A DNA stretch of 64,000 nucleotides, from positions 434,001 through 498,000 of the forward strand of contig NIVC01000089.1 in the NCBI GenBank assembly GCA_002269645.1, read 5' to 3'. A model generated the notes under the pieces. That model saw only the letters and a list, made by a program, of their open reading frames with translations. It was not told the origin of the DNA and searched no databases. The translations under genes were made by a program, and so were the position numbers. Numbering within the stretch: position 1 is the stretch's first letter; the number at the start of each line of letters is the position of its first letter. Positions 30,463 through 58,200 of this stretch are shown here, one piece after another. The stretch is from Macrostomum lignano (lineage: Eukaryota).

Positions 30463-30888
30463 CTACTTGCCAGCCGGTGCTTCCCACTGAATCCTTAATG
30501 ATTCAATTAAATCTGCCGTTTTACGGTCAACATCGCTAGCATTCCAGGAGCCTCGAATTCTAACAGCAGTCCTGTCGCTGTCAATGGCAGCATCCAGTTC
30601 GGCTTCAATGCGGCACAGCTCGGCGACAGACAGGCTTGACAAATTGGCAGAGGAAGCTTCTTGCACAGATTTCTGCAGTTGCGACTGCCTCCGGCGCCAG
30701 TCTGCCAACTCCTGCTCAATCGCGGCGCGTCTCCGCTCCAGAGCTATCGACAAGCGCTCAAACAAATCACTAGGTAGGGCTGGTTCAGGTCCTATTGACT
30801 CCAATAAATGTGACGCCTTTGAAGCCTGCGACCGAACAGACTCGAACAGTTCTTCGTTGGTTGAACCGCCAATGAATTTTGATGACAT
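30463..30888 (-). CDS. Array unit G6b: coiled-coil-only paralog
   Basis: MSSKFIGG...LIESLRIQW is homologous to the G6/G7/G9 N-termini. It stops right after the W motif at AA|GTAGGC, which is both a stop and a possible phase-2 donor. No propeller exon between it and G6. Confidence 0.65.
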   Translation of the reverse strand: MSSKFIGGSTNEELFESVRSQASKASHLLESIGPEPALPSDLFERLSIALERRRAAIEQELADWRRRQSQLQKSVQEASSANLSSLSVAELCRIEAELDAAIDSDRTAVRIRGSWNASDVDRKTADLIESLRIQWEAPAGK

Positions 30889-32392: not shown

Positions 32393-33860
32393 TCAGATTG
32401 GACGACGGATTCGGACAATCGATCCATGTTTGTTGCACACGATAATCTCGCCATGGTCCTCCATAGTTAATTGAGTAGGATCAAAGAACATGTCTGTTGG
32501 ATCAGACGCCCTGCTGACAATCCTACATATTTCGTCTGACATACCTGTGGCAGAGGTAGGCAACCAACTGATAACTGCCCCAGAATTGGGAGCCCAGGCA
32601 ATAACAAAGACTCTATTATTAATAAGCACAGCCGGTATAACAAAAGATGTAAGTTCTATATTAGGAGAAGACATTCCAGTCAGCCGGTTGCAAGTGTTAC
32701 GATAACCCTGAATGCGATATCGATTGCTAGCCACTCGGTCGACAATCAAGAGTATGTTTGACTTGCAGCACCATGCAAGCCGAATTGGAAAAGTTAGTTT
32801 TACATCGGAAGTGCATTCGCTGACGTCCGACTCGCTGACGCCCGACGGATTTGTAAGACGCGCAGAATAAATACCAGCTGTAGGACAGCACATAAAAAGC
32901 TGTTGCCCAGTACTAATGGCGTCATGCAGTTGGCCCTTAGGAACCCGAACAAAAGCCACAAGATAGCATGAATCAGATGTGCACAACAGTACGCGCTTAT
33001 TAAATTGATCAACTATAATTACATACTTGCTAATAGGGCAATAGCGAACACGATAAGGATTAAATTTCACCGGCGTTGCGTCTTTATTCATCAATTTTAG
33101 AGTGCCGTTTCTGGTACCGTTAGGGCTAAAAAAAGCTGATTTGCTTTGTACACTGTGCGAACTCAAGAACAATTATAGAATTTGGAATGAAGGCTCCAGA
33201 AAAAATATTCCAGCTTGATTTAAATATAAGCCTAAAAGCATCGTAAACTGGCGCACTACACTCCGGCAATTTAGGGGTGTCAATAAGTGAAACTTCTTGC
33301 AACTCTGACTCTTTTTGTGATGATGAATCAACACAATCTCTGAAACTAGAGCAAGCTTCCTCCGAAAGGGCATTTTTGGTAAACGATTTTGCTTGAGAAA
33401 CAACTGGCGAATAAGTTGATTCACTTTCGCTAATTTTCGAGTCCGGATTTTTCCTTGGCTCCCAATGAATTCTCAGAGCTGCGATCAATTCGTTTGTTTT
33501 AACTTGAACGTCAGTTGTGTTCCAGACCCCTCTTCGAGCTAACCTTCTGTCGCTGTTAATAGCATAAACCAATTCAGCTTCGATATCGCACAGCTCATCG
33601 ACAGGCAAAGTGCACTGCGGCAATTCAGAAGCCTTTTGCAGAGCGTCACGCAACTGGAGCCACTTTTGTTGCCATTCCGCTTGCTCTCGAGTCACAGCAG
33701 CGCGTCTCCGCTCTAGCGCTACTGAGAGTCGTTCAAAATAATCGTCTGGAGGACCGGGTTCTTGTCCCATAGACTCCAGCAGCTGCGAGGCTATTAATGC
33801 TTTGGAGCAAACTGACTCTTCTAGTTCGCTATAGGAGCAGCCGGACAGATTCGATGCCAT
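32393..33860 (-). pseudogene. Array gene G7: intronless coiled coil + NHL-like propeller, split by a +1 frameshift in a T7 run
   Basis: ORFs 33860-33126 and 33172-32393 overlap. Removing one base from the A7 run at 33128-33134 gives ...KQISFFSPNGTRNG... and a 488-aa protein. An assembly error is possible. Confidence 0.7.
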
Positions 33861-35258: not shown

Positions 35259-38200
35259 TCAATAAAGTGGACGCCGAAAGGCTAAAACGGAGCCTTTCGC
35301 ATTGCAAATAATAGCTTCACCAAAACTGCTCATCTCAGATGGAAGCCAACAAATATCTCTTGGGCTAATGTCTTCAACAGTAGCGCTGCAGTGCTCAGCA
35401 GCCAGATTCATGGCATCAGTGGGAAGCCAACTAATAGTACATGTTGAATCTGAAACCCAAACAAGTACCATTTCGTCAGCTTTAAGCAGGACATTCGGCG
35501 CCACCGATGACTGAATCGTCAATCTGGGAGCCGGGAGTGCCGTCAATTGACAGCTGTCAATCTTAAAGGCTAAAATTCTATACTCCTCAGTCTTTATAGA
35601 GGTTCGATCAACTACGAGAAGCGTTTCTGACTCGTTACACCAGGCCATTCGCACAGGACAGGAGATCTTTAAATCGGTGGAGCATAGCTTAATTTCGGTA
35701 AGGTTATCAAAAATAGCCGTGTATATGCGACCACCAGGACAGGCAATAATCAGCTGACGGCTGGTACAAATTGCGTCTTCAAAGCCTCCTTTAGGAACTT
35801 TAAGAGAGTGCAAGAGACGACCCGCAGGATTAACACAAGCAATTTGCTTGTTGGTGGGATGAGAAACTATAATCCACTGTCCAGTGCAGCTAAGTCTAAT
35901 GCGGTAAGCAGTGATATCAACGGCTTCACCACCAAGCGTGCACAGACGAATACTTTCTAACTTTTTACCTGTCAAGTTATAAACACTGAAGCAACCCCGG
36001 CCAGATCCTTCTGAAACGTAAATTCGATCGGAAAGAACAGCTGCAGACTTCGGCTTCGAAACTTTAAATAGTTGTAAAACATTCTGCGCGTGTGAAGCAA
36101 CCTGTTCAGTTGGACCTTTTCCAGCAAATCTTTCGCTAGTTAAGCGAGAATTGCTGTCTAAAGTTGAGTCGCTGTGATTTTCACAGGCGGTAAGAGCTTT
36201 CACAGTGTGAGATGCGTTGTCGGTCTTCGGCATGGGATATCTTTTGATCAGCGTTTCCGAAACAACTTCTGTAAAACAATCATTGGCAAGGCGAACTACG
36301 TCGACTGAAACATCTAAGGTGTGCAGTTCTGCATCATCTCTGATTAGCCCAGATGCGCCCATGCTAACAGCATGTTCATCCTCTCTGCTCATTACTCCGT
36401 TTGCTTCCGTCCTATCAGTTGGAGCTTCATCCGCAACGATGCCCTCGGTTGGCTCACATTCATCTTGAGTAAGATTTGTTGCAGAATCAGATTTCGCAGA
36501 TTGGTGCTGCAGGCTGCTGCAAAAATTTTTGGGCAAAAATTGCGTTTTAGGATACAACTTACGATTTTAGAACGATTTTTAATCGGATCATATTACTTAA
36601 AAATGAAAGATATAAAAAGAAATAAATAAGAGCTTACCTGCTAGAAATAACTATAACGTAGCCTGAGTTCTTACAAACAGCAAACGTGCCCTTTTCTGTA
36701 GGCACCCAATTCATGTCGATAGGAAACGACTCTATTCCAGTTTTCCAGCTTTCCAGTTCGAGCAAATCATATTGAGCGGACATCGAGTCTGAGTTAGATG
36801 CTAACCAACTAAAAACTGCCGTAGTACCATTAAGTCTTCCAATTACAAGTTCACTGTCATTCATGATAGCGCTGGGAATCACCGATGACTCAATAGCCAA
36901 ACTTGGAAAATCCAATAATTTTAAACCCTGATCACATAGCTGAAATGCCCGAATTCGATAACTGTCAGAGTTAGTTTCGTTAACGTCGACAACAAGCAAG
37001 GTTACGGAATTGCTGCACCATGCTAGTCTCATTGGAAGCAATGGCTCTGGAACGCCAAGAATATCGAGCTGGGATAGTTGCTCAACATTATCTAAAGAGG
37101 AAATGAATATGCCACTTGATGGAAAGCATGCAATTATATGCTGGCCTGTGCTAATCGCATCTTGTAAGCCAGAATGCGTATTTATAATAGCATCGACTAT
37201 TCCATTAGGTCTGGCGCACACAATTCTATCATTGCTCTGGTCGATAAGGATAATCCATTGCTTAGTTTGACATGAGCGAAGGATACTTGGAACGCAGGCT
37301 ACTTGGCGGTCATCGTGTCTTTTAAGGACAAATGCCCCGCGTGCGAAACCAGAACTCGTATACACATTAATTGGACGAGACGATGTCGATCCCAAAACAT
37401 AAAACTGCTTCTTCAAGTACGTCACGGAGATGGGATTCATAAAAGTACGAAACTTCCGCACAGATGTAGATCTAGAGTTAGTAAAGTCCGAATGGTTGGA
37501 AGAGAATTCATCATCGTGAGTATCAAACAGTTTAGAAGATTTAACAATGTTTCTATCTTCATAACTGCTTTGTTGGTTAGAGAAAAATTGCGACGCTCCA
37601 GCTTCAGTGTCTGTGAACAAGCTTCCAGAAATCTCCGAGCAAGTAATGGCGGAGAAAGGTTCTGACCATTCAAGCCCCTGATCCCTGGAACATACAGACG
37701 CGGATTGCTCACAAGTAATGGATACATCTGTGTCTGATTTCACAGAAGCTTGATATTCCAAAGATTCTGCATTAACCAGCTCAGTTGCTTTCTCTATGCT
37801 GCTGTCAGCCATCCTGCTACTGATTGTCGGCTTCTCATCGACACTTTTGAGAGCAGATTCATCACGTGGAGCTTCCTCGCGAGCGATTTCTATGGTAGCA
37901 GTTAAAGTAGGATGGTCGATTTTTTTCGACAAAGTATAGTCGCTTTGGTCCGATGACGCAGCGGCGAGACGGTCACCTATTTCGCTATTCTCGTCACGGT
38001 TTACAGAAGAATTCGAGTCTTTTTGGTTGTCTCTGACACGACCCTGAATAGAAGCTGCACATTCAGGGCCTTCTGAGTTTTGACGGGAGGCCGACTCTTT
38101 GTCAATAATCTCACTAACTTTTACTTCTTCCCAATGAACTGCCAGGGCTAGCAAAAGCTTTTCAATTTTTTCTTCAATATCGATGGTGTTCCAGAATCCG

Positions 38201-38604
38201 CGCATGACACTGCCAGACTCTGTGACAACTTTATTGATAGCGGAAGTTAAATTTGCCTCAGCATGGCACAGCTGGCTGACAGTGGTGCAGGTGGACTGCT
38301 TAGCCTCGGAGGCTTCGGAAACTGCTCTCTGCAATCGCTGACGTCTCTGCGCCCAGTCCGCCAGCTCTCGGTGGATAAGCGCACGTCTACGCGCAAGGGC
38401 AAGCGACAGCTGGTCAAAAAGTTCGCTAGGCGACGCGAGCTCTGGCCCCATCGATTCCAGCAGTAACTTCCCCATGCCCAACTTGCGTTGAACGTCCAGC
38501 TGTAGCGCTTGGAGCGCGTCGCTGTTTGGATTGTTAGAGTCGAACATGAAGAATATCAACAAGCTACTCGTTTTATTGAATAGTGAGAATAAATCACGCA
38601 TCAT
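35259..38604 (-). CDS. Array gene G8/9: coiled coil + long Ser/Glu linker + propeller + linker + second propeller, about 1055-1074 aa
   Basis: Exon 38604(or 38547)-36638, donor AG|GTAAGC, 121-bp intron, acceptor TTTTTGCAG| and exon 36516-35259 join in frame (phase 2). The second ORF has no coiled coil and starts on TTG in the ORF track. Confidence 0.7.
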
Positions 38605-39711: not shown

Positions 39712-42700
39712 TCAACTTAGCTCAGCAATTTGCTCAACCACAACCACACTACCATTTACAGCGTCGCCAAATACAGCACCTTGACCGTCGCGAAAAGTAC
39801 ACAGAGCAGTTGGACGAGTCACCGAACCAATGGCAGAGTCGACGTCCTTAGCAACGGTAACAACGCCCAACCCGGAGTTGGCGAGATTAATTAGCAACAA
39901 TCTGCAGACTTCTCTTATTCCATTGTCACCAAGGCAGACAGCGGCCGGCAGGATTAGTCGATCCCGGCTGTACACCATCAGCCCAGTCAGCACCAAAGCC
40001 GACGACGTAGCAAATGGAAGCGAATTGAAGTTCAGGCGTCGGATAGGCGAAAAGGACAGCGGCGCCAGCGGAGTCCGCGCCAGGCCGCAAAGCACTACCG
40101 CCGACGGTTGCGATCCGGCCAAGGCCGCTGACGCAACAGCCAGGAGACTGTGGCTTTGGCACCAAGCCAAGCTGGCAGGCCGGCTGACGCTCAGAGATTC
40201 GCCGGACTGACGTTGCCACACGGCCGGGGCGAGGCCGGGCTGGCTGGCGGCCAGCAGCAGGCAGTCGGTGTCCGGACAGGCCACGCAGACAAGTCCGGCG
40301 TCGGATGCGGCAACATCCGTAGCACCGGTGGCAACTTCGGAGCCTTAAACAGTCATTGAAGCGTCGAAGGAGTCATTGAAAAGTGATCGGCACTTGGCAA
40401 ACCAGGGCTATAGTGGTGCATTGGCACTTTTAGTGTTTTTTACACTAAGCAGATGTACAGTGGTGCAAATTGTTGGAAATTCCACCTCACTCATTTAAAA
40501 CAAAGTGCTCTACCTTCAAGCGTCCACAGAAGACAACCCGACGGCAGCTGAAAGGCGCGCACAGAGGTGCTGGATTCGCCAGTTCGCGCCAAAACGAACA
40601 GCGCGCCGCGTCCACCGATGACAGCCGATCGAACCGCGCCGATTCCAGTCAGCGCAGTTAAGCCTGGCGGCAGGGGCTGCTGCTGGCCGCGAATGTCGTA
40701 GCAGCCAAGTCGACCGATTTTTTTTAAATCAGAGTCTTCCTGTTCAACCACGTACAGCCGGTCATTGTGGCAGGCAATAGAGAGCGGCGTGCCGGCGTTG
40801 GCGGTGCGAAAACGCCAGGAGTTCGCGCTACTGGAGGCGGAGGTCGAGGCTGAGACGGCAGAATCGTCGGCGGTTGAGGCAAGCGAATTGGAGCGCTGAG
40901 GATTGGCGAAAATACGAAGACTAATCATTGCGCGAACGAATATATATAGGAATTTAGCACGATTCAACGCTTTTTAAATTAATTATAGAGTAATATAGCT
41001 TTTTGCAGCCCATTTGGGCTTACGCGCATTGAATTTAATCCAAGATACGTTTGCCTATGTAGTGGAGCTTTTTTCTATGGTAGCAAGGCTGGCATAGCGG
41101 CATCTAATTTGGTCCAACAAGCACAATTCGGTCCATAGCTTCATTTGCAACTGCTGCGAAGGAGCAAGATCGGCCCCAGAATTGTGGACCATATGCTAGG
41201 CTGTTGAACGAACGCCATTGGCTTGTGATCGAAGCACTCGACAGAGGTGAACACCCAAATGACATTGCAAGGTTGCTGAATGTAAAAGAAAATATGGTTT
41301 ACAGCATCCATCAGCGCGTTGAAACTCTGCCGGCAGAGATCGCCTGCGAAAGGGTGGCAATCGCCAAGGCAAGTTGCTCGAGAGCCGGCCTCAGGTCCAA
41401 CTGCTACTCGAAGCAGTTGAGAAACCCTTTGACGTTGCAGAAAATGCAGCAGAAGTTGAAGAAACAGTTCCAGTTAGTTATCAGATTTCTACCATCAGCA
41501 GAGCTCTGGAAAAGTGACTGAAAATTGTTGGTAGAAACGCTGACATTCCAGCGGTACGCAACAACCTGCAGACGGTTGCGATAAGGCAAGAGTTTGTCCA
41601 ATGGCTCCCGAGCATTCGGACCAAACTGATGCTTGTTGGACCAAACTAAATGCCGCTATGCCAGCCTTGCTACCATAGACAAAATCTCCGTTACATTGGC
41701 AAACGTATCTTGGATTAAATTCAATGCTCGTAAGCCTAAATGGGCTGCAAAAAGCTATACATATATATATGTATACTTTTTTGCGATTGAATTCATCCAA
41801 ACTGCAAAACCTTTCGTCCACAAATGCTTTCTTAATGGGAGCTAAATTTAGATTATACCATAGACAACTGTGTTCACGCAAAACGGTTCATCCAGTTTGT
41901 AAAACATTTCGTCTAAACCCTACGTCCAAACAGCTAACAGCTAAACGGAGCGACTTTATTTGATATCACGAGATATTGAACAAAGCAAAAACAGTGTCTC
42001 TTGTTAGAATGTTAGTTCAAAATGTCTTCGTAGTCCAAACAGCGGCCGTAGTAACCCACAGTGTGATTGGTCCATTGCTGGCACTTCTCCTGTGTAATCA
42101 CGTGCAGTGCAGCTTCGACCTCTCTCTTCAAAATGTGCATCCGCCAGGCCTCGGTTCATCTTCGACTGTTTTGCCGGGTTCAGAATGGAAGATATGCGTT
42201 GCTGTAGCTGTAGTGGTAGCAAAAGCGAACTGTCAATTGGGTGTTAACTATGGTAGGAACAGTACACTCGGTCTCTAGTCTAGGGGACGAAATGTTTTAC
42301 AAACTGGATGAACCGTTTTGCGCGAACACAGCTGTCTATGGTATGATCTAAATTTAGCTCCCATTAAGAAAGCATTTGTGGACGAAAGGTTTTGCAGTTT
42401 GGACGAATTCAATCGCAAAAAAGTATATTACTCTATATATATATATATTTGCGACCCGTTTGATTTTTACTTGATTAAAATCCAAGACACTAAACTGGCG
42501 CATAGCAGTCTGACGTAGCAGCGTGGGAGATTTTACACAGACAATGCATAGACAACAGAAATCAATGGTAAGCCGAGGTCAATACTCGTAAACAAGTCAC
42601 TCAAGCATTTATTGCCCTAGCACTGGTATTAATATTATTATAAATATAAATGGGGAATATTATACATGTATTCCCCAGTTGCACTGGTGCAGTAGTCTAT

Positions 42701-45700
42701 GTTCTAATGGTTTATTTCGTTTATCTGCACCGGTGCAGATAAATGATTTATTTGCACCGGCACAGAGTGCAAATAAACGAGAACTTTATATTTTAAAGGG
42801 ATACATTTGGGCATCAATAACTGAGCCACAGGTGGAATGCATGACTAAAGTAAAGAATGTCACACAGAGGACCAAACGCCGAAATAAGTCTGGACCGGTG
42901 GTTTGGAGTTTGATGTTGGTGAAATAAAGCAAATTGATAGAGACAACGAATAGAATAAAAACGACGAGATTTCACTGTAACAGTCGCCAAAAGTAGTCTT
43001 AATAGTCGCCAAGAGTCACTTTGAAGCGCATTTTTTGTCTGCGACTCTGAAACGACTCTGATGCGACGCAAGTGACCCTGCCGCGACGGTATAACGACTC
43101 TGGGGCCGTAGACTCGTATTCGAAGCGCTATAGTCGTGTTTGAAGCGCATTTGCGTCGCTTGATGAATTAGAGTGACATCTCTAGCGAAATTTAAGCGAC
43201 CAACACACACGATTCTTGGAGGATTCTATCAAGACTTACAATTTCACAACGTGACGCGTTTGAGTCGTTAAAGTAAGTCACAAAAGTCACTCCAGAGTCG
43301 TTTTCTAAAACCTAGTCTAATCCATTTTTCCAAAAAACGAATTAAGTTTCAGACTGAAACTCGATCTTGGATAGCTGTGATGCAAAAACTTTAGAGCTTC
43401 TCAATCAATTTTCATCGGGAATGGTCTTGCTTAAGATAAAACGAGCAGCTTGTTTTTGGAAGTTTCTTTAGGGAGTAAATGTTCAGAGCACCGGCCCATA
43501 TAATTCGCACAGAAGTAAATCCCAGGGAAGTGCCGACACCCATGGACAAAATTAACACTAGAATATTCATTAAGTCACCCATATCGAATTTTAGGCTGCC
43601 AATGATTTTGCTTACCGTATAGGTCAGTGACCTCTCTGAGGAATATAAACGTATAACATCTATGGTGACGCATCCACTTACGTTAGCTAAAACAGCACGA
43701 TGAGGAGTTTCAATTGCAACCAGTTGCTTTGCCTCATCATTGGCTGGCTTCGCCTCTATTCTGGTGCCAATATTGGCTTCAACTGTGTCGCCAGTGCCGC
43801 CAGCAGCTGAGAAGGACTCAGTCAACGGTATGAACAGGCTGGAAAGGCGAAGTGCAGCACCCGAGATAACGGTGCTGCCTGACGACTTGATTGAACTTGC
43901 AGCTGGCAAGAGAAGCGGTTCAATGCCGTCAGCGGAACGGAAGCCGCAATTTGGGCAGGCAAGGTCGCGAGTTCGAGCATCCTGTAGCGCGACAAGACAA
44001 GGTGCGCAGAACACGTGGCCGCAAGGTATCCGTCTCGGATCAATAAACGACGCGTTGCAGACGTTGCAGGTTTGACTGATGTCCCTCTTCTGCTGCGCCT
44101 TGTCTGGGAGAGCATTTTCTTGACTGGACAGGCTCCTGTCTTTTAGATTGGCTGTGTAACCAGTGTTCTTTGTCTCTTCATTAACATTGGGTTGAGCGCT
44201 AGCCATTTCTGAAGCTTTCACTGACAAAGAAGATACTTTGGGAGCAGCAAAGAAGGGAGCAGCAGCCATCGACGCAGTGATACTAGAGGCACTAAACGTC
44301 TCAATGCTTGGCCCAGCAGAAGATTTTTGCTTACGCGCAGTGGACACAGCAACTGTTGCCACGTCAGCTGTAGCCGACTGATTCGCTGAGTTGGCCGATT
44401 CTCTAAAGGAAAAGGAAAAGAAAGGAAACTGAAATCTAGGCATGGAACAAGTCTATAGAATTAATTTGAGAATGAAATAACCGAAATAATACTTTAGTCG
44501 AGTCAGAAATTCAATTTATATATCTGATTCTATATGCTTACGAGGATACCTAAATTTTTTTTGGTTTCGACCCTTTTTGACCAAGGTCAGCGCACCAAAC
44601 TTCCACACCTTTTCAGAGCACCCCCTCCCCCTACTCTGAGTACAGCGCTCCATACGATGAAACCAGGCCTGAAAGCACTGGGACCACTTCTTCGGAATAG
44701 GCACCTCTTTTATAGGGAGGCTCTGTAGGCTTCCTCTTCGTCCTGGAATTAAAGTTCCACGAAGTTTTTCCTTGGCTAGTGCAAACAACAAGTAGTCCCA
44801 CGGTGCCAAGTCAGGAGAATTAGGAATGGATTTCTGAGCCATGAAACCCACATTGCGAGCTGCTGTGTGGGCACACTGGTATTGTCGTGGTGCCACAACA
44901 TACCGCATGTTCCGCTGCGAGGTCTCTTCTCGTGCCACTTCTGCAGAACCTCTGGTACGCATACTGTTGTGTACCATTCTTGTTGTGTCCCTTATACTGG
45001 CCCTTAATGCCAGTAATCCCAGTTTGTTTTTTCTAAGCTTGTTTGCTAAATGATGTCGACACCAAGGACTACTCAAGTGGGACGGAAAACTACGTTTTCT
45101 TAGAAAATGTTAAGAAGGCTGGTTTTCGCCAAAAATACACTACTGAGATAGGAAGTTTTCATTCTTTCAGCACAAAATTGTTATTGCTTTCGATAGGAGG
45201 CAGACCCAATGCTCAACCCCCGATATGCTGTGCCTTTCTTCTACGAAATTCTTCTCTATTTGATTCTAGGTAGAATAAAGAATTAGCACAGAATCCAAAT
45301 TTTCTGAACAAAAAACCCGTTGAACTTTTCACCCGGAATTTTTTCCTATTCCAGTAATGCAATCAGATCCGGGTGGAAATTCCGGATCTGTAACGAAAGT
45401 TTACAGAATCCGGGCGAATTTTCCGGATCATTTGGTCCGGATCACTGAGGAATTCCGACTGAAGTCCCGAAATTCTCCCGGATCAGCTTCGCCCGGAAAT
45501 TGGCTGAAATTCGGGTCAAGGGGAGCTGATCCGGGTGAATTTTCCGGATCACTGGGGAATTCCGACTGAAGTCCCGAAATCTCACCCGGAACATTTTCAT
45601 CCGGAATCTTCATCCGGTATCCTACTAAAATTCGGGTCTACACTCAGAATTCAGTAGTGTACCGGGTGAAAAATTTCGGAAAATCCAACCCGAACAGCTT

Positions 45701-48700
45701 TTCTTTTTCCCAAAATTTTACCGGATCATATTTCCGGATCTTTCTCCGGAAAAAGTGGCTGTTCCGGGCCAAAAAAGCTGATCCGGGCCTTCATCCGGAA
45801 ATAAATTAAAAATCGGGCCCGGATCACAAAATTCCGGGTGAAAAGTTCAACGGGAACTTTATGAAAATCAATATACCTATAGGAAAGGCACAACATATCA
45901 AAAGATGAAAATTGGGTCTGTCTCCTATCGGAAGCAATAACAATTTTTATGCTGAAAAAATGAAAACTTCCTATCTACGTAGTGTATTTTTGGCGAAAAC
46001 CAGCCTTCTTAACATTTTCTAAGAAACGTAGTTTACTGCTTCTTCTACTTGAGTAGTCCTTGGCCGACACACAAAGAGCACTACTCACGCTGGCCTGTCA
46101 ATAAACAGTACGGAGCCGAGCTTGTCCCAGACTGCCACAGTCTGGCAGTTGTCATCGTCGCTCGCGCTTGTCACATCGGCTGGCAGGCACTGCGCCAGCT
46201 GCACCTGGCGCACCGAGTAATCATCCAGTGAGGTGGCGCCCGGCGGCAGCCAGCTGACAACCAGCCGGCCGGGCCAGTAGCGCGCCACAACCAGCTCGCC
46301 ATCTGCGCGCACCAGCAGCGCCGGCAGAGTGGCCGATTGAAGAGATACACAAGGCCGCTGGGCTGGCCGAAATTCCGCTGTTGAAGTGGCCGAGTTTGCA
46401 TTGATTTTATAAGCGCGGATCGAATACTCGGAGCTGCTGTCGGCTGATTGGTCTGTGACCAGCAGCAGCCTGTACTGCCGGCACCAGGACAGGCGCTTGG
46501 GCTGGACCGGTTCGTTGGACTTGAATGTGCACCTGTTGATGTTTAATCAGCATTAGGAATGTAAACAGGGAATGTCAACTTGAGCACTGAAATTGGGGCC
46601 AGAAGCGAAGCAATCTATAACTTGTCCGACTAGCCGACTAGAGAGGCCGTGAGGTATGGGAAGAAGCTTTGGACTTCCATAGGATAGGATAGGACATTTA
46701 TTGGATTCTCAAATTCTGACTGCCAGCCAACAGTTCGAAGACCAGAAATTGACTACAAAGACCCTAACTATTAACCTTTAACCCCTACTTACCCTAATCA
46801 TAAATCATAACCCAAATTGCTAGCAGCCAAATCGGTAATCAAATTCATTAATTAAAATAATTGGTTTGATATTGTACCTAACATGTACTTTGGTAGCCCA
46901 AGGGAGGGACCTAGTTTCTAGTTGACTCAATGCAATAATTCAGTAGTACCTTGACAGAAATTTTAGTGCCCCTTGTAATTTCACCGAAAATATGGCTTAT
47001 CTATCAGATAGAATGAATAGAAATATTTCGTTAACACTGCTATAAATAAGAATGTGACGAATAATTTTGTACAAGCCGTACGTCATCTGGCACGGCTCGG
47101 CTCATTGGTTTAATGACCCTGTTTTATCGTTCTTAGCTGACTGTGTAACAAAGTGTGTAACAGAGATGATGAAATAGATTCATAAAATCAAAGAGTCGAG
47201 CAGTGCCATGCATTTTTATGACTTCTAGGTACAGGGAATGTACGTAGAATAAAAATCTAACATAGAATTCTAATTTTCTGAACAAAAATCTTTATTAATA
47301 TCAATAGAGCTATAAGAAAGGCAAAACATATCAAACTGCCTCCTATCGAAAGCAATAACAATTTTATATGAAAAAAGTGAAAAGTTCCTATCTCCGTAGT
47401 GTATTTTTTCGAAAAAACCAGCCTCCTTAACTTTTTCTGAGAAACGTAGTTTCCGGCCCTTCTATTCGAGTAGTCCTTGGTGTAAGTTAGCATAATAATG
47501 ATTGTTTGTTCTTATGTACATCGTTCAAAAACTGCAAGTTTTACAATCATGGTGATTATGCCGCTAAGAAGTGCATCTCGAATCCACCAATAGACTTATT
47601 TAGGTCTTGGATTAAGATATTGTTGTATTGTAATCAAAGCAAAAATGATGACATGTATTCATTTTGTTAACACACCTGTTCAAACCGCTTCCTTTATCAA
47701 CAGGGCCAGTGTAAAATTGGTGTTAACCCACCTGTTCAAACCGCTTCCTTTATCAACAGGGCCAGTGTAAAATTGGTGTTAACACACCTGTTCAAACCGC
47801 TTCCTTTATCAACAGGGCCAGTGTAAAATTGGTGTTAACACACCTGTTCAAACCGCTTCCTTTATCAACAGGGCCAGTGAAAAAAATGGTGTTAACACAC
47901 CTGTTCAAACCGCTTCCTTTATCAACAGGGCCAGTGTAAAATTGGTGTTAACCCACCTGTTCAAACCGCTTCCTTTATCAACAGGGCCAGTGTAAAATTG
48001 GTGTTAACACACCTGTTCAAACCGCTTCCTTTATCAACAGGGGCAGTGTAAAATTGGTGTTAACACACCTGTTCAAACCGCTTCCTTTATCAACAGGGCC
48101 AGTGTAAAATTGGTGTTAACCCACCTGTTCAAACCGCTTCCTTTATCAACAGGGCCAGTGTAAAATTGGTGTTAACCCACCTGTTCAAACCGCTTCCTTT
48201 ATCAACAGGGGCAGTGTAAAATTGGTGTTAACACACCTGTTCAAACCGCTTCCTTTATCAACAGGGCCAGTGTAAAATTGGTGTTAACCCACCTGTTCAA
48301 ACCGCTTCCTTTATCAACAGGGGCAGTGTAAAATTGGTGTTAACCCACCTGTTCAAACCGCTTCCTTTATCAACAGGGGCAGTGTAAAATTGGTGTTAAC
48401 CCACCTGTTCAAACCGCTTCCTTTATCAACAGGGGCAGTGTAAAATTGGTGTTAACACACCTGTTCAAACCGCTTCCTTTATCAACAGGGCCAGTGTAAA
48501 ATTGGTGTTAACACACCTGTTCAAACCGCTTCCTTTATCAACAGGGCCAGTGTAAAATTGGTGTTAACACACCTGTTCAAACCGCTTCCTTTATCAACAG
48601 GGCCTGTGTAAAATTGGTGTTAACACACCTGTTCAAACCGCTTCCTTTATCAACAGGGGCAGTGTAAAATTGGTGTTAACCCACCTGTTCAAACCGCTTC

Positions 48701-50964
48701 CTTTATCAACAGGGCCAGTGTAAAATTGGTGTTAACACACCTGTTCAAACCGCTTCCTTTATCAACAGGGCCAGTGTAAAATTGGTGTTAACACACCTGT
48801 TCAAACCGCTTCCTTTATCAACAGGGCAGTGTAAAATTGGTGTTAACCCACCTGTTCAAACCGCTTCCTTTATCAACAGGGCCAGTGTAAAATTGGTGTT
48901 AACACACCTGTTCAAACCGCTTCCTTTATCAACAGGGCCAGTGTAAAATTGGTGTTAACCCACCTGTTCAAACCGCTTCCTTTATCAACAGGGCCAGTGT
49001 AAAATTGGTGTTAACACACCTGTTCAAACCGCTTCCTTTATCAACAGGGGCAGTGTAAAATTGGTGTTAACACACCTGTTCAAACCGCTTCCTTTATCAA
49101 CAGGGGCAGTGTAAAATTGGTGTTAACCCACCTGTTCAAACCGCTTCCTTTATCAACAGGGCCAGTGTAAAATTGGTGTTAACCCACCTGTTCAAACCGC
49201 TTCCTTTATCAACAGGGCCAGTGTAAAATTGGTGTTAACACACCTGTTCAAACCGCTTCCTTTATCAACAGGGCCAGTGAAAAAAATGGTGTTAACACAC
49301 CTGTTCAAACCGCTTCCTTTATCAACAGGGCCAGTGTAAAATTGGTGTTAACCCACCTGTTCAAACCGCTTCCTTTATCAACAGGGCCAGTGTAAAATTG
49401 GTGTTAACACACCTGTTCAAACCGCTTCCTTTATCAACAGGGGCAGTGTAAAATTGGTGTTAACACACCTGTTCAAACCGCTTCCTTTATCAACAGGGCC
49501 AGTGTAAAATTGGTGTTAACCCACCTGTTCAAACCGCTTCCTTTATCAACAGGGCCAGTGTAAAATTGGTGTTAACCCACCTGTTCAAACCGCTTCCTTT
49601 ATCAACAGGGGCAGTGTAAAATTGGTGTTAACACACCTGTTCAAACCGCTTCCTTTATCAACAGGGCCAGTGTAAAATTGGTGTTAACACACCTGTTCAA
49701 ACCGCTTCCTTTATCAACAGGGGCAGTGTAAAATTGGTGTTAACCCACCTGTTCAAACCGCTTCCTTTATCAACAGGGCCAGTGTAAAATTGGTGTTAAC
49801 CCACCTGTTCAAACCGCTTCCTTTATCAACAGGGGCAGTGTAAAATTGGTGTTAACACACCTGTTCAAACCGCTTCCTTTATCAACAGGGGCAGTGTAAA
49901 ATTGGTGTTAACACACCTGTTCAAACCGCTTCCTTTATCAACAGGGCCAGTGTAAAATTGGTGTTAACCCACCTGTTCAAACCGCTTCCTTTATCAACAG
50001 GGGCAGTGTAAAATTGGTTGCGCTCCGAGCAGACAATCAGGTGTTGCCCAGTGCTAACAGCGTCCACCAAGTCAGCCAAAATGCCAGCCACAGCGGTAAC
50101 CTGGCCGCTGGTCTTGGCCCAGGCCACCCGCTTGTGCCCGGCATCAAGCAGGATCAGGCGATTCGACACGCGGCAGGCGGCAACCCGAACCGGCCAGGTC
50201 ACTTTTTTGTCGGACAATTTCACTTCTCCAATGCTACGAATCGCCGGACAATTTTCGTCGCTGCCAAGCGAATAGGCCACAAGGCGAACTTGTTCGATAC
50301 CGCGAGAACCGGACACTTCTAAGTTGTAGTAGGTGTCCCCGAGGCGGGTTGCAGAAATCAGAGGCGAAATAAGACGGACTGACTTGGACTGAGTTGTTGC
50401 TCCAAAAAGAGCTGCATTTGATCTGCCCGACTCAGCAACAGAGCCTGCAGTTGACCTACCAGACGCCGACTCGCTTAAACATCCAGAATTCGCAACAGAA
50501 GAAGCTAAAGTCGAACTGTTTGAATTCGAGGCAGAATCAGAAGAGCTCAGTACAGCATCTGCTGCAGTTTTCGCCGACTGTCTCGGTGACTGCACCGGAT
50601 TTTTGTCAACTTTGCTACCAAAATTTACCAACGAATAGCCTCCTCCAGCAACCGGAACAAAGGCGGCGGTCCTGTAACTGTCTGTCGCAGGCATCCACCG
50701 CAGTTCCAAACAGCGCATGAGCCTGGCAACTGCTGACTTTAACTCGGCATTAGATTCTCTGCTCAATTTGTTCTCTACCGAGCAGTGCCGAGTAAGCTGT
50801 GCGAGTTGCCCTGAGAGACGGGCGAAAAAAGCATCAATGTTTGTCTGGCAACAGCCGGCCGACTCTGTGGCGTCAAGGAGTCGACGAACAACGTCAGCCT
50901 TCTGACGGAGTCGCTGCCGGGCGAGCCGCTCCAGGATCAGCTGACTGTCAGCTGACTCTTGCAT
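39712..50964 (-). CDS. Array gene G10: coiled coil + propeller + C3HC4 RING + propeller, 1056-aa model (probable E3 ligase)
   Basis: Exons 50964-49973, 46532-46089, 44402-43682, 40895-40514 and 40343-39712. All joins are GT-AG and frame-compatible (phases 2,2,0,1), total 3171 nt. The exon 1/2 join reads GLNR-CTFKSNEPVQPKRLSWC, matching the paralog PxRxAWC motif. Confidence 0.6.
40996..41757 (+). mobile_element. Tc1/mariner-derived non-autonomous element
   Basis: About 130-bp TIRs (TAGCTTTTTGCAGCCCATTT... / ...AAATGGGCTGCAAAAAGCTA) with TA on both flanks. Internal remnant ORF 41204-41521 has a helix-turn-helix-like IARLLNVKENMVYSI. Confidence 0.75.
41774..42425. mobile_element. Second TA-flanked MITE with ~140-bp TIRs
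   Basis: TACTTTTTTGCGATTGAATTC...CATTTCGTC (41774-41912) is mirrored at 42285-42425. Confidence 0.75.
43946..44068 (-). other. C3HC4 RING finger coding segment
   Basis: CNVC-x11-CGHVFCAPC-x13-CPNC, TRIM-like spacing. Confidence 0.92.
44516..45050 (-). mobile_element. Degenerate mariner transposase C-terminal remnant
   Basis: PNSPDLAPWDYLLFALAKEKLRG resembles the mariner YSPDLAPxD motif, and FQAWFHRMERCTQSRG resembles the C-terminal motif. Confidence 0.75.
45062..46063. mobile_element. MITE with ~150-bp TIRs (CCAAGGACTACTCAAG...CTTGAGTAGTCCTTGG)
   Basis: Inverted arms at 45062-45207 and 45913-46063. Further family fragments at 47257-47480 and 10340-10432. Confidence 0.8.
45316..45854. mobile_element. 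Nested CCGG-rich MITE with CCC...GGG ends
   Basis: 26-bp TIR CCCGTTGAACTTTTCACCCGGAATTT. The empty-site homolog at 47275-47300 suggests a 2-bp (AA) target duplication. Confidence 0.75.
47665..50017. repeat. 56-bp tandem array (about 42 copies) derived from the G10 exon 1/intron 1 junction
   Basis: Unit (A/C)CACCTGTTCAAACCGCTTCCTTTATCAACAGGGCCAGTGTAAAATTGGTGTTAAC. Period 56 (47671, 47727...). The minus strand encodes NQFYTAPVDKGSGLNR followed by a GT donor. Confidence 0.97.
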
Positions 50965-52201
50965 GGTCGGGCTGTTGACCAGAAAATGATTTATTGATAT
51001 TATAACTGGTAAACTAGTCGTATAATTAAATAACATTTTAGCTGTCCTTTTAGGGAACTTCAGGAACTACACAACTCTAGGCAAGTAGTAATACCAATTT
51101 TGCAGTCCTGCCTAAGCCCAACTCACACGGATATGCACGCACTCACAAGCAGCATGTACAGAGGACCTGATTTTCTCTTTATTAGCCATGCAGACAGTCG
51201 GCGCCTTTGAGACTGGCTCTAATGGGCTTGAATTGCACAACAAGACCCACCCCTGGGCTAAGTGCAAAAGCTGAATTACGAGTAACTAGGACTAAAATTG
51301 CACAATTAGATATGTACAAGACAGAGTTCAACAATTTTAGCAAAATGTGGCACAAGTTTTATTGCATATAAACATGCTCAAAGTAAATAACATGATAGAA
51401 TCCATAAGTTTACGTGATGCAGTACATGAGCAGCAAGTAACAATGAGCAGTTTCAGTAGCAGTAGTACAATTATCAATATAGAAATGCGTTTGCACGTCT
51501 GGGCATTCTGCGACAGTTTTAAACTATTTCAGTAAGACTACAAATAAAATTCTTAATTAGTCTGTGAATGGGAAGGGTTCTAAATTAAAAAACGAGCACT
51601 ATTAGTAATAGACTACTAAGAGTAGATAAACAGAAAGCTTCGTTTTAACGAATATTTTCCTAAGGACTCGCCTTTCTGCGCAAACCTTGTGATGGCGCCT
51701 GATTGAGAGCTTCATCAACAACACACAACAGCAACATCAACAACAAAGCACGCGGTCGCAAATTTCTTAAACGATAACAGTGTCACAGGGCCTTATAATT
51801 ACTAATTTTTATGTATCTGCTCTATCGCTTCGATTGTTTGTTTTATTTTGACTGTAAAAAAGAATTAGATGTGAATTTATTTGTTCTCATATAGTTTAAA
51901 AGAAAAAACCAAAATGCTGAGGAGTTGATCGCCTGGAATTTAATCACTGCCAGAAATATCAAAGCAAAAACCAGACGTTCATATATTGGCCGTGTACTTT
52001 CTTGGGAAACGCAGGCCCCTCAAAAAAAGTTCTAAAAAACGCAAAGTGTCCATTCCATCCACACTTAGCTTCTAGTGGTCCTTGCGATCGGTGCAGCAGA
52101 CAAATTTACACGCAACTGGGGACCAGTTGACAAGACAAAATGCCAGAGAAAATTGACCCAATAAAAAAGAGCTCAACAGGATGTACAGCCCCGACTGGCA
52201 A

Positions 52202-55200
52202 CTAAATCGGCTGAGCCGCCCACAACTTGAAGGTCCTGTCAAAGCCGCAGGTGACGATAAACCGGCTGTCCGGGGCGATGTCCGCGCACATCAAGCGCGA
52301 CTCGTGCCCACTCAGCTGGTGGATTGGAGTCCAGTTTGGGTGGCTCCACAGCCGGGCACTGCCATCGTAGGAGGCGGTTAGCAGGAAATGGGAGATGCCG
52401 GCTGCGCCAGAGCTGCCTGGCTGGAACAGCACCTGCGGGTGGGGATGGGGAAGACTGAGAAGCTGACAAGGCAGAACAGCAACTGACGAGCTGACAAGGC
52501 TGGCCCAGCAACTGAGGACATGGGAGGCTGGACCAACTGAGGATCTGGGAGACTGGTGGCCCAGCAACTGAGGATCTGGGAGGCTGGCCCAGCAACTGAG
52601 GATCTGGGAGGCTGGCCCAGCAACTGAGGATCTTGGAGGCTGACCCAGCAACTGAGGATCTGAGAGGCTGACCCAGCAACTGGGGATCTGGAAGGCTGGC
52701 CCAGCAAATGGGGATCTGGGAGACAGACCCAGCAACTGAGGATCTGTGAGGCTGGCCCAGCAACTGGGGATCTGGGAGACAGACCCAGCAACTGAGGATC
52801 TGGGAGGCTGGCCCAGCAACTGAGGATCTGGAAGGCTGGCCCAGCAACTGAGGATCAGGAAGGCTGGCCCAGCAACTGGGGGTCTGGGAGGCTGGCCCAG
52901 CAACTGAGGATCTGGAAGGCTGGCCCAGCAACTGACACTCTGGGAGGCTGGCCCAGCAACTGAGGATCAGGAAGGCTGGCCCAGCAACTGGGGATCTGGG
53001 AGGCTGGCACAGCACCTGAGGATCTGGGAGGCTGGCCCAGCAACCGGGGATCTGGGAGACAGACCCAGCAACTGAGGATCTGTGAGGCTGGCCCAGCAAC
53101 TGAGGATCAGGAAGGCTGGCCCAGCAACTGAGGATCTGGGAGGCTGGCCCAGCAACTGAGGATCTGGAAGGCTGGCCCAGCAACTGAGGATCAGGAAGGC
53201 TGACCCAGCAACTGGGGATCTGGGAGGCTGGCCCAGCAACTGGGGATCTGGGAGACAGACCCAGCAACTGAGGATCTGGGAGGCTGGCCCAGCAACTGGG
53301 GATCTGGGAGGCTGGACCAGTAACTGGGGATCTGGGATGATGGCCCAGCAACTGGGGATCTGGGAGGCTGACCCAGCAACTAGAGATCAAGGAGTGGCCC
53401 GTGGCGGTTCAGCTAGAATTTGGGTGAAACATACAAAAATCAAAAGTCCAACCTTGGAGACGTTGCTGGTATGCGCAGGCACAGTGTACAGGCAGACTTG
53501 CTTGCGTAGATCCCACAGCTTGGCCCCATTGTCTTCTGAGCCCGTCGCCATGTGATGCCCGTTGGGCGCGAACGCCACTGAGAGGACGCTGCGCTGGTGG
53601 CCTTCCAGCAGCATCACACAGCGACCGTTGCGGAGGTCCCAGACGCGGCCGAAGCTGTCCAGGCCGCCAGTCAGCGCCAGGCTGCCGTCGGGGTGAAATG
53701 CGATGTCGTACACCTCCTTGCTGTGGCCCTCCTGGTGCAGGATTTCATCGCCGGCCTCGAGATCCCAGAGGCGCCAGGAGTAGTCGAATACGCAGGTGCC
53801 CAGGAAGCGGCCGGACGGGTGCCAGGCCAAGCGGCTGACCCTGGATGGAGCCGCGAAGGGGGAGGGGGTAATCAATGGAATGAGGGCAGACCAAATCGAA
53901 ATTGAATGGGTAATGAGACGCGAATAAACAAAATGAGGCGGTAATGAACCAGATGAGGAATTAATGAACCAGATGAGGCATTAATGAACCAGATGAGCAT
54001 TAATGAACCAGATGAGAAAGTGATGAACCAGATGAGGCATTAATGAACCAGATGAGAATGTAATAAACCAGATAAGGCATTAATGAACCAGATGAGGCAG
54101 TAATGAACCAGATGAGGCATTAATGAACCAGATGAGGCAGTGATGAACCAGATGAGGCATTAATGAACCAGATGAGAAAGTGATGAACCAGATGAGGCGG
54201 TAATGAACCAGATGAGGCAGTGATGAACCAGATAAGGCAGTAATGAACCAGATAAGGCAGTGATGAACCAGATGAGGCGGTAATGAGCCGGATGAGGCAT
54301 TAATGAACCAGATGGGGCGGTTATAAACCAGACGAGGCATTAATAAACCAGATAATATGTCAGCAGCACTAGCCAGCCACAAAAAGACCCGCACCTATAC
54401 GGTTCGTGGCCATCCAGCTCAGCATAGGGGGATTCGCTGTCCAAAGACCAGAGCTTCACAGCGCCATCCAGAGAGCTGGACGCTAGCGCAACCGGGCCAG
54501 CCTCAGGCGTGGTGGCCTTCGGATGCCAAGCTACACAGCAGGCGTTGGTTTTGTGGCCGCGCAAAGTGAGGGCCAGCTCGCACTCGGGCAGGCGCCAGAC
54601 CTGACAGAGGCCGGACCAGCTGCTGACAGCCAGCTGGGAGCTGTCTGGCGACACCTGGCAGTAGCTGAGCGGCCTCGAATCGCCAATTTGGCTGGCCTGG
54701 ATGGCGAACGAGCGCAGATTGTTCTGCCATTCCATGTGGCGAGCTTTGCGCACCGAGTCCGGCGTATTGGCGTAGTAGGCTCGAGCGGCATCTAGGCGAG
54801 CGCGGGCCCTGGGCAGCGAGTACTCAGCCAGCCACAGCCGGCCGGTCTGCAATGTAACGATTGCATGGCAACCAGGTAAGTGGCTATGGCAACAATCTAC
54901 CGAAATTTTCGGGTAACTAAATATTTTACTCTTAGTTTGTATTTTTAGTATATGGAAGTGTGCGGTGAGTAGCCGGTTGTAAGTGTACGGTGAGTGGCCG
55001 GTTGTAAGTGTACGGTGAGTGGCCGGTTGTAAGTGTACGGTGAGTGGCCGGTTGTAAGTGTACGGTGAGTGGCCGGTTGTAAGTGTACGGTGAGTGGCTG
55101 GTTGAAAGTGTACGGTGAGTGGCCGGTTGTAAGTGTACGGTGAGTGGCTGGTTGTAAGTGTACGGTGAGTGGCCGGTTGTAAGTGTACGGTGAGTGTCTG

Positions 55201-58200
55201 GTTGTAAGTGTACGGTGAGTGGCCGGTTGTAAGTGTACGGTGAGTGGCCGGCTGTAAGTGTACGGTGAGTGGCCGACTGTAAGTGTACGGTGAGTGGCCG
55301 GTTGTAAGTGTACGGTGAGTGGCCGGTTGTAAGTGTACGGTGAGTGGCCGGTTGTAAGTGTACGGTGAGTGGCCGGTTGTAAGTGTACGGTGAGTGGCCG
55401 GTTGTAAGTGTACGGTGAGTGGCCGGCTGTAAGTGTACGGTGAGTGGCCGGCTGTAAGTGTACGGTGAGTGGCCGGTTGTAAGTGTACGGTGAGTGGCCG
55501 GTTGTAAGTGTACGGTGAGTGGCCGGTTGCAAGTGTACGGTGAGTGGCCGGTTGCAAGTGTACGGTGAGTGCCCGAAAATGTCGAAATCTCAGCCACTAG
55601 TAGTGTGGTAGTTTCTAGCGGGCCAACTGCAGCGCGCCAATCCAAAATTGAAAATGAGGCAGAGTGTGCAGAATGAAACTCGTACACCTGTACTCCGACT
55701 CAAGCACCATAAGTACAAAACTGACCTTCAGCGCTTCCGGGCCCTCGTGATACCACAGCTCCTTGTTGATGGCCGCACCGCTAGCAGACGTCGAGGCTCC
55801 AGCTGTTGACGCGGCGGCTTCGGAGTCGCCAGCGGAGTCGGACGCTCCGGCAGGACGCTTGCGAATCGCAGACTCGCCGTGCAGGACAATCAGAGTCTTC
55901 AGGCGTTCTCGACGATCGGCTGCATCTTCGCCAAATAGGCAGATCGGCTCTCCAAGCTGGCGCAGGTAGGCGCGCACTTCGCGATCGTCTGTTGACACCT
56001 GGATGATGGGCAGGTGGCTGATTGCTTATCTGAGCTACGTGTATACATGCTGCAAATGTATTACTGGGGTTTTAGCCTAGTGGCCAGAGCGTCAGACTCG
56101 CGACTGAAAGGTCGGGAGTTCGATTCCCGATCCCACTGGAACAATTTTGTCCTTGAGTAAGACACGCATTGCTTCAGTTCACCCAGCTGTAAAATGGGTG
56201 CCAGCATTAGCTGGGGCAATTGGGGGTGTGTGTGGCGACCCCCCCCCCTGCCTTGGACTGAACAGCTGCGGCTGAGCTGTCGGTTGCACATCTGCCCCAT
56301 TAGGGCAGGTGTCAACAATTATGATTAATATTATCATTATTAATATATGTATTACGGAAGGTTAGAACTACTTTAACTAACCAACCAGAGAACTATCAGC
56401 TAGACGTCACCAGGCAAAGCATATCAGTCATCAAAGGAGAAGATTCTAAACGAATCCCCTTTCACTCAAACTTTTCTCGACTTGCTTGACTAAAAATCAG
56501 GAAAAAGTATCTGAGAAGCAGTTAAATAATTACAGATATCTGGTTGCTTTTGCTCCAGAGAGGAACGAAAGATGTACTCAGGAAGCCAGAAATTTCTATT
56601 TTTTCATGACAAATGAGTTTTTCAGCCAACATGTAGGAAATATTAACGCTTTAAGCAATTGTTTAATTTGCCAGATCAACAAGAGGTCGTGCGGCAGGTT
56701 ACCCAACCGAACCAACTTTCTCAACCACAGCCTACGCCCGGCAAACAAGAACTAGACTAGAACTAGATGCACTAGTTCAAATAAGGTTTCCCAGTTCAGA
56801 ACCCATCATCCAGATGAATGGCAGCGCTTGGAGCGGATCTCTCCTGAACGAATGAGGCGTATTTACACCCCGACAACAGCAAACGTCTCCAGGTACAGCA
56901 TCAATAATCGTACTGTTGTGGCGCGCAGATTGAATATTGAATATTTCCACGTGCATCAGTCGTTGTATCATATTCATGATACATTGTATTTAACTGTCAT
57001 TCTGTCAATCACTTCAAGCATTACCATACATGCGCAACCTCTAAAATTCGGTCGGCCATGCGACTTAGTTTTAACAAAAATGCGACGTAGTTTTTGGCCA
57101 AAAATGCGACTTACATGTAATAAAAACCCTAAAGCAAATTAACGCAACTTTGGGTAAACGGCAGGAGTAACTATGACTGTCTTATTAGGTCAAAATGCCT
57201 CGTCAGCTACTTTAGTTATACTATTTTGGTATTTTTCGGGTGGGCATTTTTGCGACTTCCTTGATTGGCTGCCAAATCGGTCGGCCGGATCGGCCAACTC
57301 GGCCGACTGTTGCGCATGTATGAGCATTACGCAACATATTTAAGCCAAGTTAATTGTTCTACTATATACGCACCACGAGCATGATTAATAAACAGTATAA
57401 ATACGCTCGTATACAGCAGTGGAGTCAGTTGAGATTCCAAAATTCTTACTTGCATTAAAAAATCCACGCGTTCAAGACACCAACACATACCAAACGAAAA
57501 ATCTTTGATTTTCTCGTAGCTCCCCTTGCAACGCAAAACGCAATTCATAACTTGTACTCTTTCCTCTTATCTAAGCTGTGGAGAGCTTTATGCTGTTGCA
57601 GCCCTAAGCCCTTCCACAATACGTTGGCTGGAGGAAAAACTTGCTAACTGCTCGCTCTTAAAACTTTTGCCCACCTCCTCATCTTTCAGAAGCCGTTTCT
57701 TCACCCCCCTCCTCCACAGAAATTTCATTAACTTCTGTCTCAAGAGAGCTGTGACTATGAGCAGTACAGGTAATAGTAGGAAAGCTTGAGGGGGGTAGTG
57801 GAAAGAGAAACACAGGGTCGAAATCGCTACAGCTGTCTTTGAGTCTCTGAAGGAACCTCACCCGATCCTCATTTACAATACATACATACCAGTTAATTTT
57901 CGACCAACTGCTTATTGCTACAGTTGATAAGCTCAGAACTTCGAGCAATAGTAGCTTCTCCATATCATTCATTTAATTCCCTACAATGTAATGTTGCATC
58001 GCGTCCACTGTAATGTATAAAATCTTCAGCATTGTTGCATTGAGATTCATAAATTTGTTTGCGTTTCATCATGTCGTTTACATGGTGTAGAATCTAGATA
58101 TACGAGAGCAGAGAGGAGTGAAAGAGTGCACAACTTGATGTGTTTTCTAAATAAAATATTAATCGCGCTTTATCACATCATTTCCATCGGGTTGAACAAG

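Follow-up and report, generated by a model that had tools for sequence, protein, structure and literature searches.

A gene of Macrostomum lignano in which a splice donor overlapping a stop codon probably joins two tandem units into a coil-NHL-RING-NHL protein

The DNA analysed here, 64,000 nucleotides (nt) of contig NIVC01000089.1 from Macrostomum lignano (assembly Mlig_3_7, GCA_002269645.1), is referred to as the window, and all coordinates are given within it. The minus strand of the window carries BOX15_Mlig013203g1, which is a real gene, already annotated as an unnamed hypothetical or 'RING-type domain-containing' protein but undescribed. The best explanation of its structure is that one gene is formed from two adjacent units, A and B, and that a 5' splice site (donor) overlapping the stop codon of unit A is probably used to generate a protein of 1056 amino acids (aa) with the order coil-NHL-RING-NHL, a putative E3 ligase. 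The scrambled domain order would then be due to a splice site placed over the usual stop codon, which joins the two neighbouring units. A fused mRNA is favoured on the evidence of public transcript-derived gene models at two homeologous loci, the one in the window and a copy on contig NIVC01001995.1 (sequence L001). Transcript support was taken from public annotations built from RNA-seq; that of Mlig_3_7 was assembled with StringTie, TACO and mapped Trinity transcripts, and its TBONE pipeline split transcriptional units where spliced-leader and poly(A) sites had been mapped by experiment (PMC5730564).

The initial annotation of this DNA, made from the letters of the sequence, had proposed five exons with GT-AG introns in compatible phases and 1056 codons. 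This model was rebuilt and agrees with the public records at both loci. The five minus-strand exons sum to 3171 nt and join into a single frame of 1056 codons plus a stop, with no internal stops. All four introns are GT-AG and compatible in phase, with the donors GTGGGT, GTGAGT, GTAAGT and GTAGAG in order. The rebuilt product is identical to GenBank PAA91374.1 (1055 aa, 5' partial) apart from the initial Met, and the homeologous product, PAA61812.1 (1083 aa, complete), has the same exon plan and architecture. Comparison of the homeologs over the 1056 codons showed every indel to be in frame and an overall ratio of non-synonymous to synonymous substitution (dN/dS) of 0.40. GC content is 0.52-0.62 in the exons vs 0.41-0.43 in the introns, and GC at third codon positions (GC3) is high in exons 4-5. 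A search with the 1056-aa product matched solely M. lignano proteins, and a literature search found no paper on the family or on the gene identifiers. The parts of the gene are as follows.

49973-50964, minus strand: exon 1, with the start codon ATG at 50964-50962; encodes the coil, a Ser-rich linker and the first blades of propeller 1
50710-50961, minus strand: helical coiled-coil region, aa 2-85 (AlphaFold2)
50392-50709, minus strand: disordered Ser-rich linker, aa 86-191 (AlphaFold2)
49973-50391, minus strand: first blades of NHL propeller 1, the propeller beginning at residue 192 (AlphaFold2)
46089-46532, minus strand: exon 2, the remaining blades of NHL propeller 1, ending ...VLFIDRP(A); C-half family hidden Markov model (HMM) E 5e-40
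46083-46088, minus strand: 5' splice site GTGAGT, of which bases 2-4 are the in-frame TGA at 46087-46085
44403-46088, minus strand: intron 2, 1686 nt (997 nt in the homeolog)
43682-44402, minus strand: exon 3 (the RING exon), preceded by a strong polypyrimidine-AG acceptor; encodes the RING and a disordered linker; donor GTAAGT
43946-44068, minus strand: C3HC4 RING with eight zinc ligands, aa 599-639 of 1056 (Pfam and pattern scan)
40896-43681, minus strand: intron 3, 2786 nt, with nested inverted-repeat transposon remnants
40514-40895, minus strand: exon 4, completing the Ser-rich linker and encoding, from ~40820, the N-terminal blades of propeller 2; N-half HMM E 0.009
39712-40343, minus strand: exon 5, C-terminal part of propeller 2, with the stop TGA at 39714-39712; C-half HMM E 4e-5

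The TGA at 46087-46085 lies at the position where the paralogs have their C-terminal end, and an unspliced product would terminate in ...VLFIDRPA; the concern of the initial annotation that transcripts might end at this codon was therefore justified. All of the public models that extend over the junction (5/5) splice exon 2 to the RING exon, reading FIDRPA|E[S/P]AN, and among these models three are fragments from the older ML2 assembly (A0A1I8GP84, A0A1I8GKC8 and A0A1I8GVG7). The coding junction falls exactly at the GT and the AG, and the two exons are joined in phase 2. No separate coil-propeller or RING-propeller product was found among the public models, and the annotation pipeline made no cut between units A and B at either homeologous locus. 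The donor, the stop codon, the polypyrimidine tract and the acceptor are all retained in L001. Divergence between the homeologs falls from ~14% over the last 78 nt of intron 2 to 1.5% over the 132 nt past the acceptor, and this drop coincides with the acceptor rather than with the first in-frame ATG of the RING exon (44269-44267), from which the acceptor is separated by an open stretch of 133 nt. An alternative start at ATG 44443, at the head of the long RING open reading frame (ORF), was rejected as it is absent from the homeolog.

The sequence around the junction was also compared with what is known of trans-splicing in this species. The 3' end of the M. lignano spliced leader is an ATG (PMC8629364); joined at 44402, this ATG would be out of the RING frame and would meet a stop after 12 codons. 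Neither AATAAA nor ATTAAA occurs in the 1686 nt of intron 2, which is weak evidence as ~1.6 occurrences are expected by chance (an estimate from base composition). The units are spaced 1686 nt apart here and 997 nt apart in the homeolog, and can be compared with the operon spacing threshold of 1000 bp (PMC8629364).

The strongest internal argument for the fused gene comes from the array in which it lies. About 12 family units were located on the minus strand between 10.7 and 51 kb with HMMs built from the paralogs, and two further genes of the array also contain two propellers, an arrangement that had been missed by the initial annotation.

35259-38544, minus strand: sibling gene PAA91373.1 of 1054 aa, RING-less, in the order coil-NHL-linker-NHL
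22969-26348, minus strand: sibling gene of 1009 aa, RING-less, in the order coil-NHL-linker-NHL, its two units not separated by a stop

PAA91373.1 has a 121-nt intron whose donor, G|TAAGC at 36637, overlaps the TAA stop of its first unit, and this stop-overlapping donor is in the same phase as the GTGAGT described above. Each of the three coil-less NHL units in the window is joined in frame to the unit that precedes it, while a stop-bypassing donor was found at none of the eight other unit ends; the chance probability of such a 3-joined/8-unjoined split over 11 unit ends is ~1 in 165. The double propeller is consequently a recurring design of the family, shared with two RING-less neighbours, and does not set BOX15_Mlig013203g1 apart. 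Its two unique features are the RING in the linker between the propellers and the strong divergence of propeller 2: the second propellers of both siblings are close copies of their own first propellers, and here the second propeller is an outlier.

The wider family was collected by an exhaustive search of representative proteins, from which the bacterial and viral collections were left out, the window being animal DNA. Thirteen clusters (50% identity) score below 1e-30, all of those looked up are from M. lignano, and none other than the cluster of this gene contains a RING. The family appears to be restricted to M. lignano in the databases searched. Its intron positions are not all inherited, since intron 1 lies ~35 codons downstream of the position common to most paralogs, and the intron of unit B lies near that common position, yet in phase 1 instead of phase 2. 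Several members of the array are irregular. At 32393-33860 and 28130-29781 a coil ORF and an NHL ORF overlap out of frame (p33 and p29), and GenBank annotates only the coil ORFs of these two members (244 and 265 aa); an orphan coil ORF of 138 aa occupies 30463-30879. Pseudogenes or frameshifts in the assembly probably account for the out-of-frame members and the orphan coil. For the last member of the array (10696-12012), no C-terminal half was found in the window.

Unit A has the plan of the RING-less paralogs. AlphaFold2, run with an alignment of paralogs, predicted helices at residues 2-64 and 72-85 (predicted local distance difference test score, pLDDT, 55-75), disorder at residues 87-191, and a six-bladed propeller of 24 strands (pLDDT 85-94). 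The top Foldseek matches of propeller 1 were the NHL domains of Thin, Brat and TRIM2 (E 6e-10 to 6e-9), with template modelling (TM) scores of 0.60-0.69, normalised to the target. The family propeller profile, compared with the PDB, retrieved NHL domains only, with Thin as the best match (7.9e-4), followed by NHLRC2, TRIM71, TRIM2/3, Brat and Mei-P26, and the distant matches of the exhaustive family search were NHL-repeat proteins. Propeller 1 can thus be assigned with confidence as a six-bladed NHL propeller. No match to Pfam NHL (PF01436) above the gathering score was obtained with the 1056-aa protein or its exons, so that the assignment required profile and structure comparison; two family members touch the Pfam model (P0008, 21.0 bits with a cut-off of 20; P0014, 16.5 bits). 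A comparison of the propeller profile with a large protein collection gave no match, the candidate list probably having been filled by low-complexity words. The best PDB match of the coil profile was the TRIM25 coiled coil, which was non-significant (E 0.05). The link to TRIM-NHL proteins drawn in the initial annotation is supported for propeller 1 and the RING, and is only hinted at for the coil. No RING was detected in the first 190 residues (Pfam, AlphaFold2), and inspection by eye of the short ORFs between the upstream PRP4 gene and the start codon revealed no relic RING or B-box ahead of the coil. Within the Ser-rich linker, at ~50400-50470, a 33-nt coding repeat (GRS[NT]AGSVAES) is present in ~2 copies, with ~7 in L001 at 10600-10780; the GenBank model of the homeolog drops 66 nt of this repeat as an 'intron', which may be an artefact arising from transcripts of another allele.

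Unit B begins with the RING, which had been placed at 43946-44068 as the only one of the array; Pfam scores and a six-frame scan bear out both statements. The ligands are spaced C-x2-C-x11-C-x-H-x2-C-x2-C-x13-C-x2-C (CNVC...CGH...CPNC), and the domain scores above the Pfam gathering scores for both zf-RING_UBOX (33.2 vs 25.2) and zf-C3HC4 (30.7 vs 21). No further RING was identified by a six-frame pattern scan of the window. The nearest solved RINGs are those of TRIM39, RNF135, TRIM69, CBL, TRIM2, TRIM21 and TRIM25, and the domain is classed as a TRIM-like C3HC4 RING. The zinc ligands are identical in the allelic copies P0002 and P0004, while adjacent residues vary. No B-box was present among the Pfam matches of the exon ORFs or of proteins P0003 and P0004. 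A linker of ~130 disordered residues separates the RING from propeller 2. The latter shares ~13% identity with the paralogs, has a high content of Ala, Leu, Ser and Gly, and gives weak matches, in the correct order, to the two half-propeller HMMs of the family (N-half and C-half). Alignment with the family profile (hhalign) gave a probability of 81% (E 1.2e-5) over 143 columns, covering the first ~176 residues. Foldseek matched unit B to generic propellers alone, with low TM scores, and an NHL fold is for that reason not claimed from structure. These data indicate that propeller 2 is probably a very divergent homolog of the family propeller, its assignment as a propeller being of low confidence. 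Of the two propellers placed on either side of the RING by the initial annotation, the first is therefore a confident six-bladed NHL propeller and the second is a far more tentative one.

The protein was compared with several known arrangements. The TRIM-NHL proteins (TRIM2, TRIM3, TRIM32/Thin, TRIM71/LIN-41, Brat and Mei-P26) share with it a six-bladed NHL propeller and a TRIM-type C3HC4 RING, and in both a long helical region lies ahead of the propeller; they also include RING-less members such as Brat, as does the present family. In TRIM-NHL proteins, however, the RING is N-terminal, whereas here it is internal and follows an NHL propeller, the coil occupies the very N-terminus, no B-box was detected, there are two propellers instead of one, and sequence similarity is too low for a Pfam NHL match. 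The protein has the parts list of a TRIM-NHL ligase but lacks two defining features, an N-terminal RING and a B-box, and is not to be filed as a TRIM-NHL member. Unit B alone resembles NHLRC1/malin, in which a RING is followed directly by NHL repeats: it is likewise a RING, a linker and an NHL-like propeller without a B-box or coiled coil, a comparison of layout only. Unlike malin, unit B is spliced behind a complete coil-NHL unit, has a linker of ~130 residues and carries a highly divergent propeller. Conjoined genes also join same-strand neighbours by splicing from the last coding exon of the upstream gene to an acceptor inside the downstream gene, bypassing the upstream stop. Here, in contrast, the join is kept at two homeologous loci, occurs in three genes of the array and is the sole annotated form, and this suggests that the architecture is fixed and not that of an occasional chimera. 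With PAA91373.1 and the 1009-aa gene, the protein shares family, array and the order coil-NHL-linker-NHL; there is no RING in their linkers.

The following mechanism is proposed. Units A and B would belong to a family that is specific to the lineage, has expanded in tandem and derives from TRIM-NHL-type proteins. Unit A supplies the coiled coil, the first disordered linker and the six-bladed NHL propeller, and unit B a TRIM-type RING, a second disordered linker and the very divergent NHL-like propeller. Splicing at GTGAGT would remove the TGA of unit A and connect the unit, in phase 2, with the RING exon, which lies 1.7 kb further downstream. The resulting protein may be a RING-type E3 ubiquitin ligase, dimerising through the coil in the manner of TRIM proteins, with one or both propellers binding a target protein or RNA. 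Retention of intron 2 would lead to termination at the TGA and a RING-less coil-NHL protein, and the splice could in this way switch between ligase and non-ligase forms. The locus may plausibly have arisen when a TRIM-NHL-like ancestor was duplicated in tandem, the copies lost either the RING or the coil, and the units were then fused. The suggestion of the initial annotation that this member lends its RING to the paralogs through coil heterodimers is speculative. A more elaborate scenario combines the stop-codon splice switch with such a sole RING member in a fast-diversifying array, the variable propellers of the paralogs serving as a set of target receptors, and regards the gene as an intermediate, caught in the act, of domain permutation through tandem duplication and fusion; taken as a whole this is improbable.

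The initial annotation had allowed for either a fused gene or two. As two genes, a coil-NHL gene would end at 46085 and a RING-NHL gene would begin at ATG 44269, following trans-splicing at 44402 or from a promoter of its own, with the fusion as a minor read-through product. The coincidence of the TGA with the C-termini of the paralogs agrees with this arrangement, but neither A nor B alone is represented by a public model, all five being joined, and TBONE made no cut between the units at either locus. Trans-splicing is common in M. lignano (~30-39% of genes, many of them in operons) and a strong polypyrimidine tract precedes the acceptor at 44402; the spliced-leader ATG is nevertheless out of frame there, intron 2 contains neither AATAAA nor ATTAAA, and the donor of exon 2 fits the top donor motif of the species, GT[G/A]AG. 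A RING followed by NHL repeats is known as a stand-alone layout (e.g. P0034), while in this array all three coil-less units are joined in frame to the unit upstream. Between the acceptor and the ATG, no signal for or against coding was seen in the sequence. Further observations weigh against the fused gene. Unit A alone would be a complete, paralog-like protein, given that the TGA is exactly at the normal C-terminus of the family, and unit B, with its in-frame ATGs (the first at 44269) and malin-like layout, could work alone. The 44 open codons ahead of ATG 44269 have a chance probability of ~0.15, and the changes between homeologs in this stretch (0 synonymous, 2 non-synonymous) are uninformative on coding. 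The transcript evidence is second-hand, being taken from annotations, and the ~95% identity of the homeologs allows reads to map to both, so that the two loci are not fully independent evidence. In addition, the gene identifiers, sought for expression data in the text and supplements of M. lignano papers, were not found. Taken together, these data make two separate genes unlikely, and the annotation built from RNA-seq favours the fused gene; an unspliced, RING-less isoform is still plausible beside the fused one because the TGA lies exactly where the paralogs end.

It was also considered whether the working product might be the coil-NHL protein only, with unit B a decaying relic that is functionless or that targets the mRNA and protein for decay. 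The low identity of propeller 2 to the paralogs (~13%), the alignment of its first ~176 residues alone to the family profile, its bias towards Ala, Leu, Ser and Gly and its poor modelling would agree with decay, as would the broken appearance of other array members (the out-of-frame ORFs p33 and p29, and the orphan coil). Three further results count against the fused ligase. The residue after the last zinc ligand is Gly, where many active RINGs have a basic residue, this basic 'linchpin' being common in active RINGs; AlphaFold2 modelled unit B, as beta strands and a helical insert, with a mean pLDDT of only 52 (55-84 in the propeller region); and propeller 2 differs from its homeolog at 7 sites, from which selection on it is not assessable. 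However, every copy seen keeps ~1735 nt of exons 3-5 open, none of the eight RING ligands is lost or changed among allelic copies while their neighbours vary, the GC content of the exons is coding-like, with high GC3 in exons 4-5, against the AT-richer introns, and AlphaFold2 still yields a closed, propeller-like arrangement of sheets. A relic unit B is accordingly very doubtful, and a single fused gene probably accounts for the locus.

The introns of the gene and the adjacent DNA are rich in repeats, one of which is listed below.

47665-50018, strand not assigned: 56-bp tandem repeat, 42 copies at 97% identity (Tandem Repeats Finder)

This repeat starts within the 3' end of exon 1 and occupies most of intron 1, and each unit duplicates the end of the exon and its 5' splice site (GAACAG|GTGGGT or GTGTGT). 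The expansion is specific to this copy, as L001 has a single unit, and the additional donors cannot lengthen the ORF, since 56 is not divisible by 3 and TGATAA occurs in every unit. A repeat of ~190 bp occurs in both orientations in introns 1 and 2 (47480-47297, 46071-45864 and 45249-45030). Intron 2 is itself repeat-rich and contains an ORF at 44516-45076 that resembles, by eye and with no Pfam match, the C-terminus of a mariner/Tc1 transposase. Intron 3 holds two nested inverted-repeat pairs at 40994-42461, one of 130 nt with 93% complementarity and one of 176 nt with 91%, and a plus-strand ORF inside the 130-nt pair (41204-41521) resembles a helix-turn-helix protein; the inverted repeats are likely to be remnants of foldback transposons or of miniature inverted-repeat transposable elements (MITEs). 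Directly upstream of the gene, on the minus strand at 52200-58900, is a gene for a PRP4-type WD40 splicing factor, the span of which contains 28-, 20- and 25-bp tandem repeats that are apparently intronic and make long spurious ORFs. The fused gene at the homeologous locus is named g2 of its transcriptional unit. Arrays of a 23-bp satellite are located at the low-coordinate end of the window (1-1049, 3898-5670 and 7498-9126).

If the fused protein is made and is active, a RING would be able to work mid-protein in a TRIM-like ligase, between two substrate-binding propellers. The activity of TRIM-NHL proteins is thought to depend on the placement of N-terminal RINGs by the coiled coil, and to our knowledge a mid-protein RING between propellers is undescribed for TRIM-NHL ligases. 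The significance of the locus is tempered by the gene model being already public, and lineage-specific domain shuffling is not rare in repeat-rich polyploid genomes. The locus is a clean and repeated example of how tandem paralogs become multi-domain genes, with a stop-overlapping donor in two genes of one array, and it points to a flatworm-specific expansion of RING-less coil-NHL proteins.

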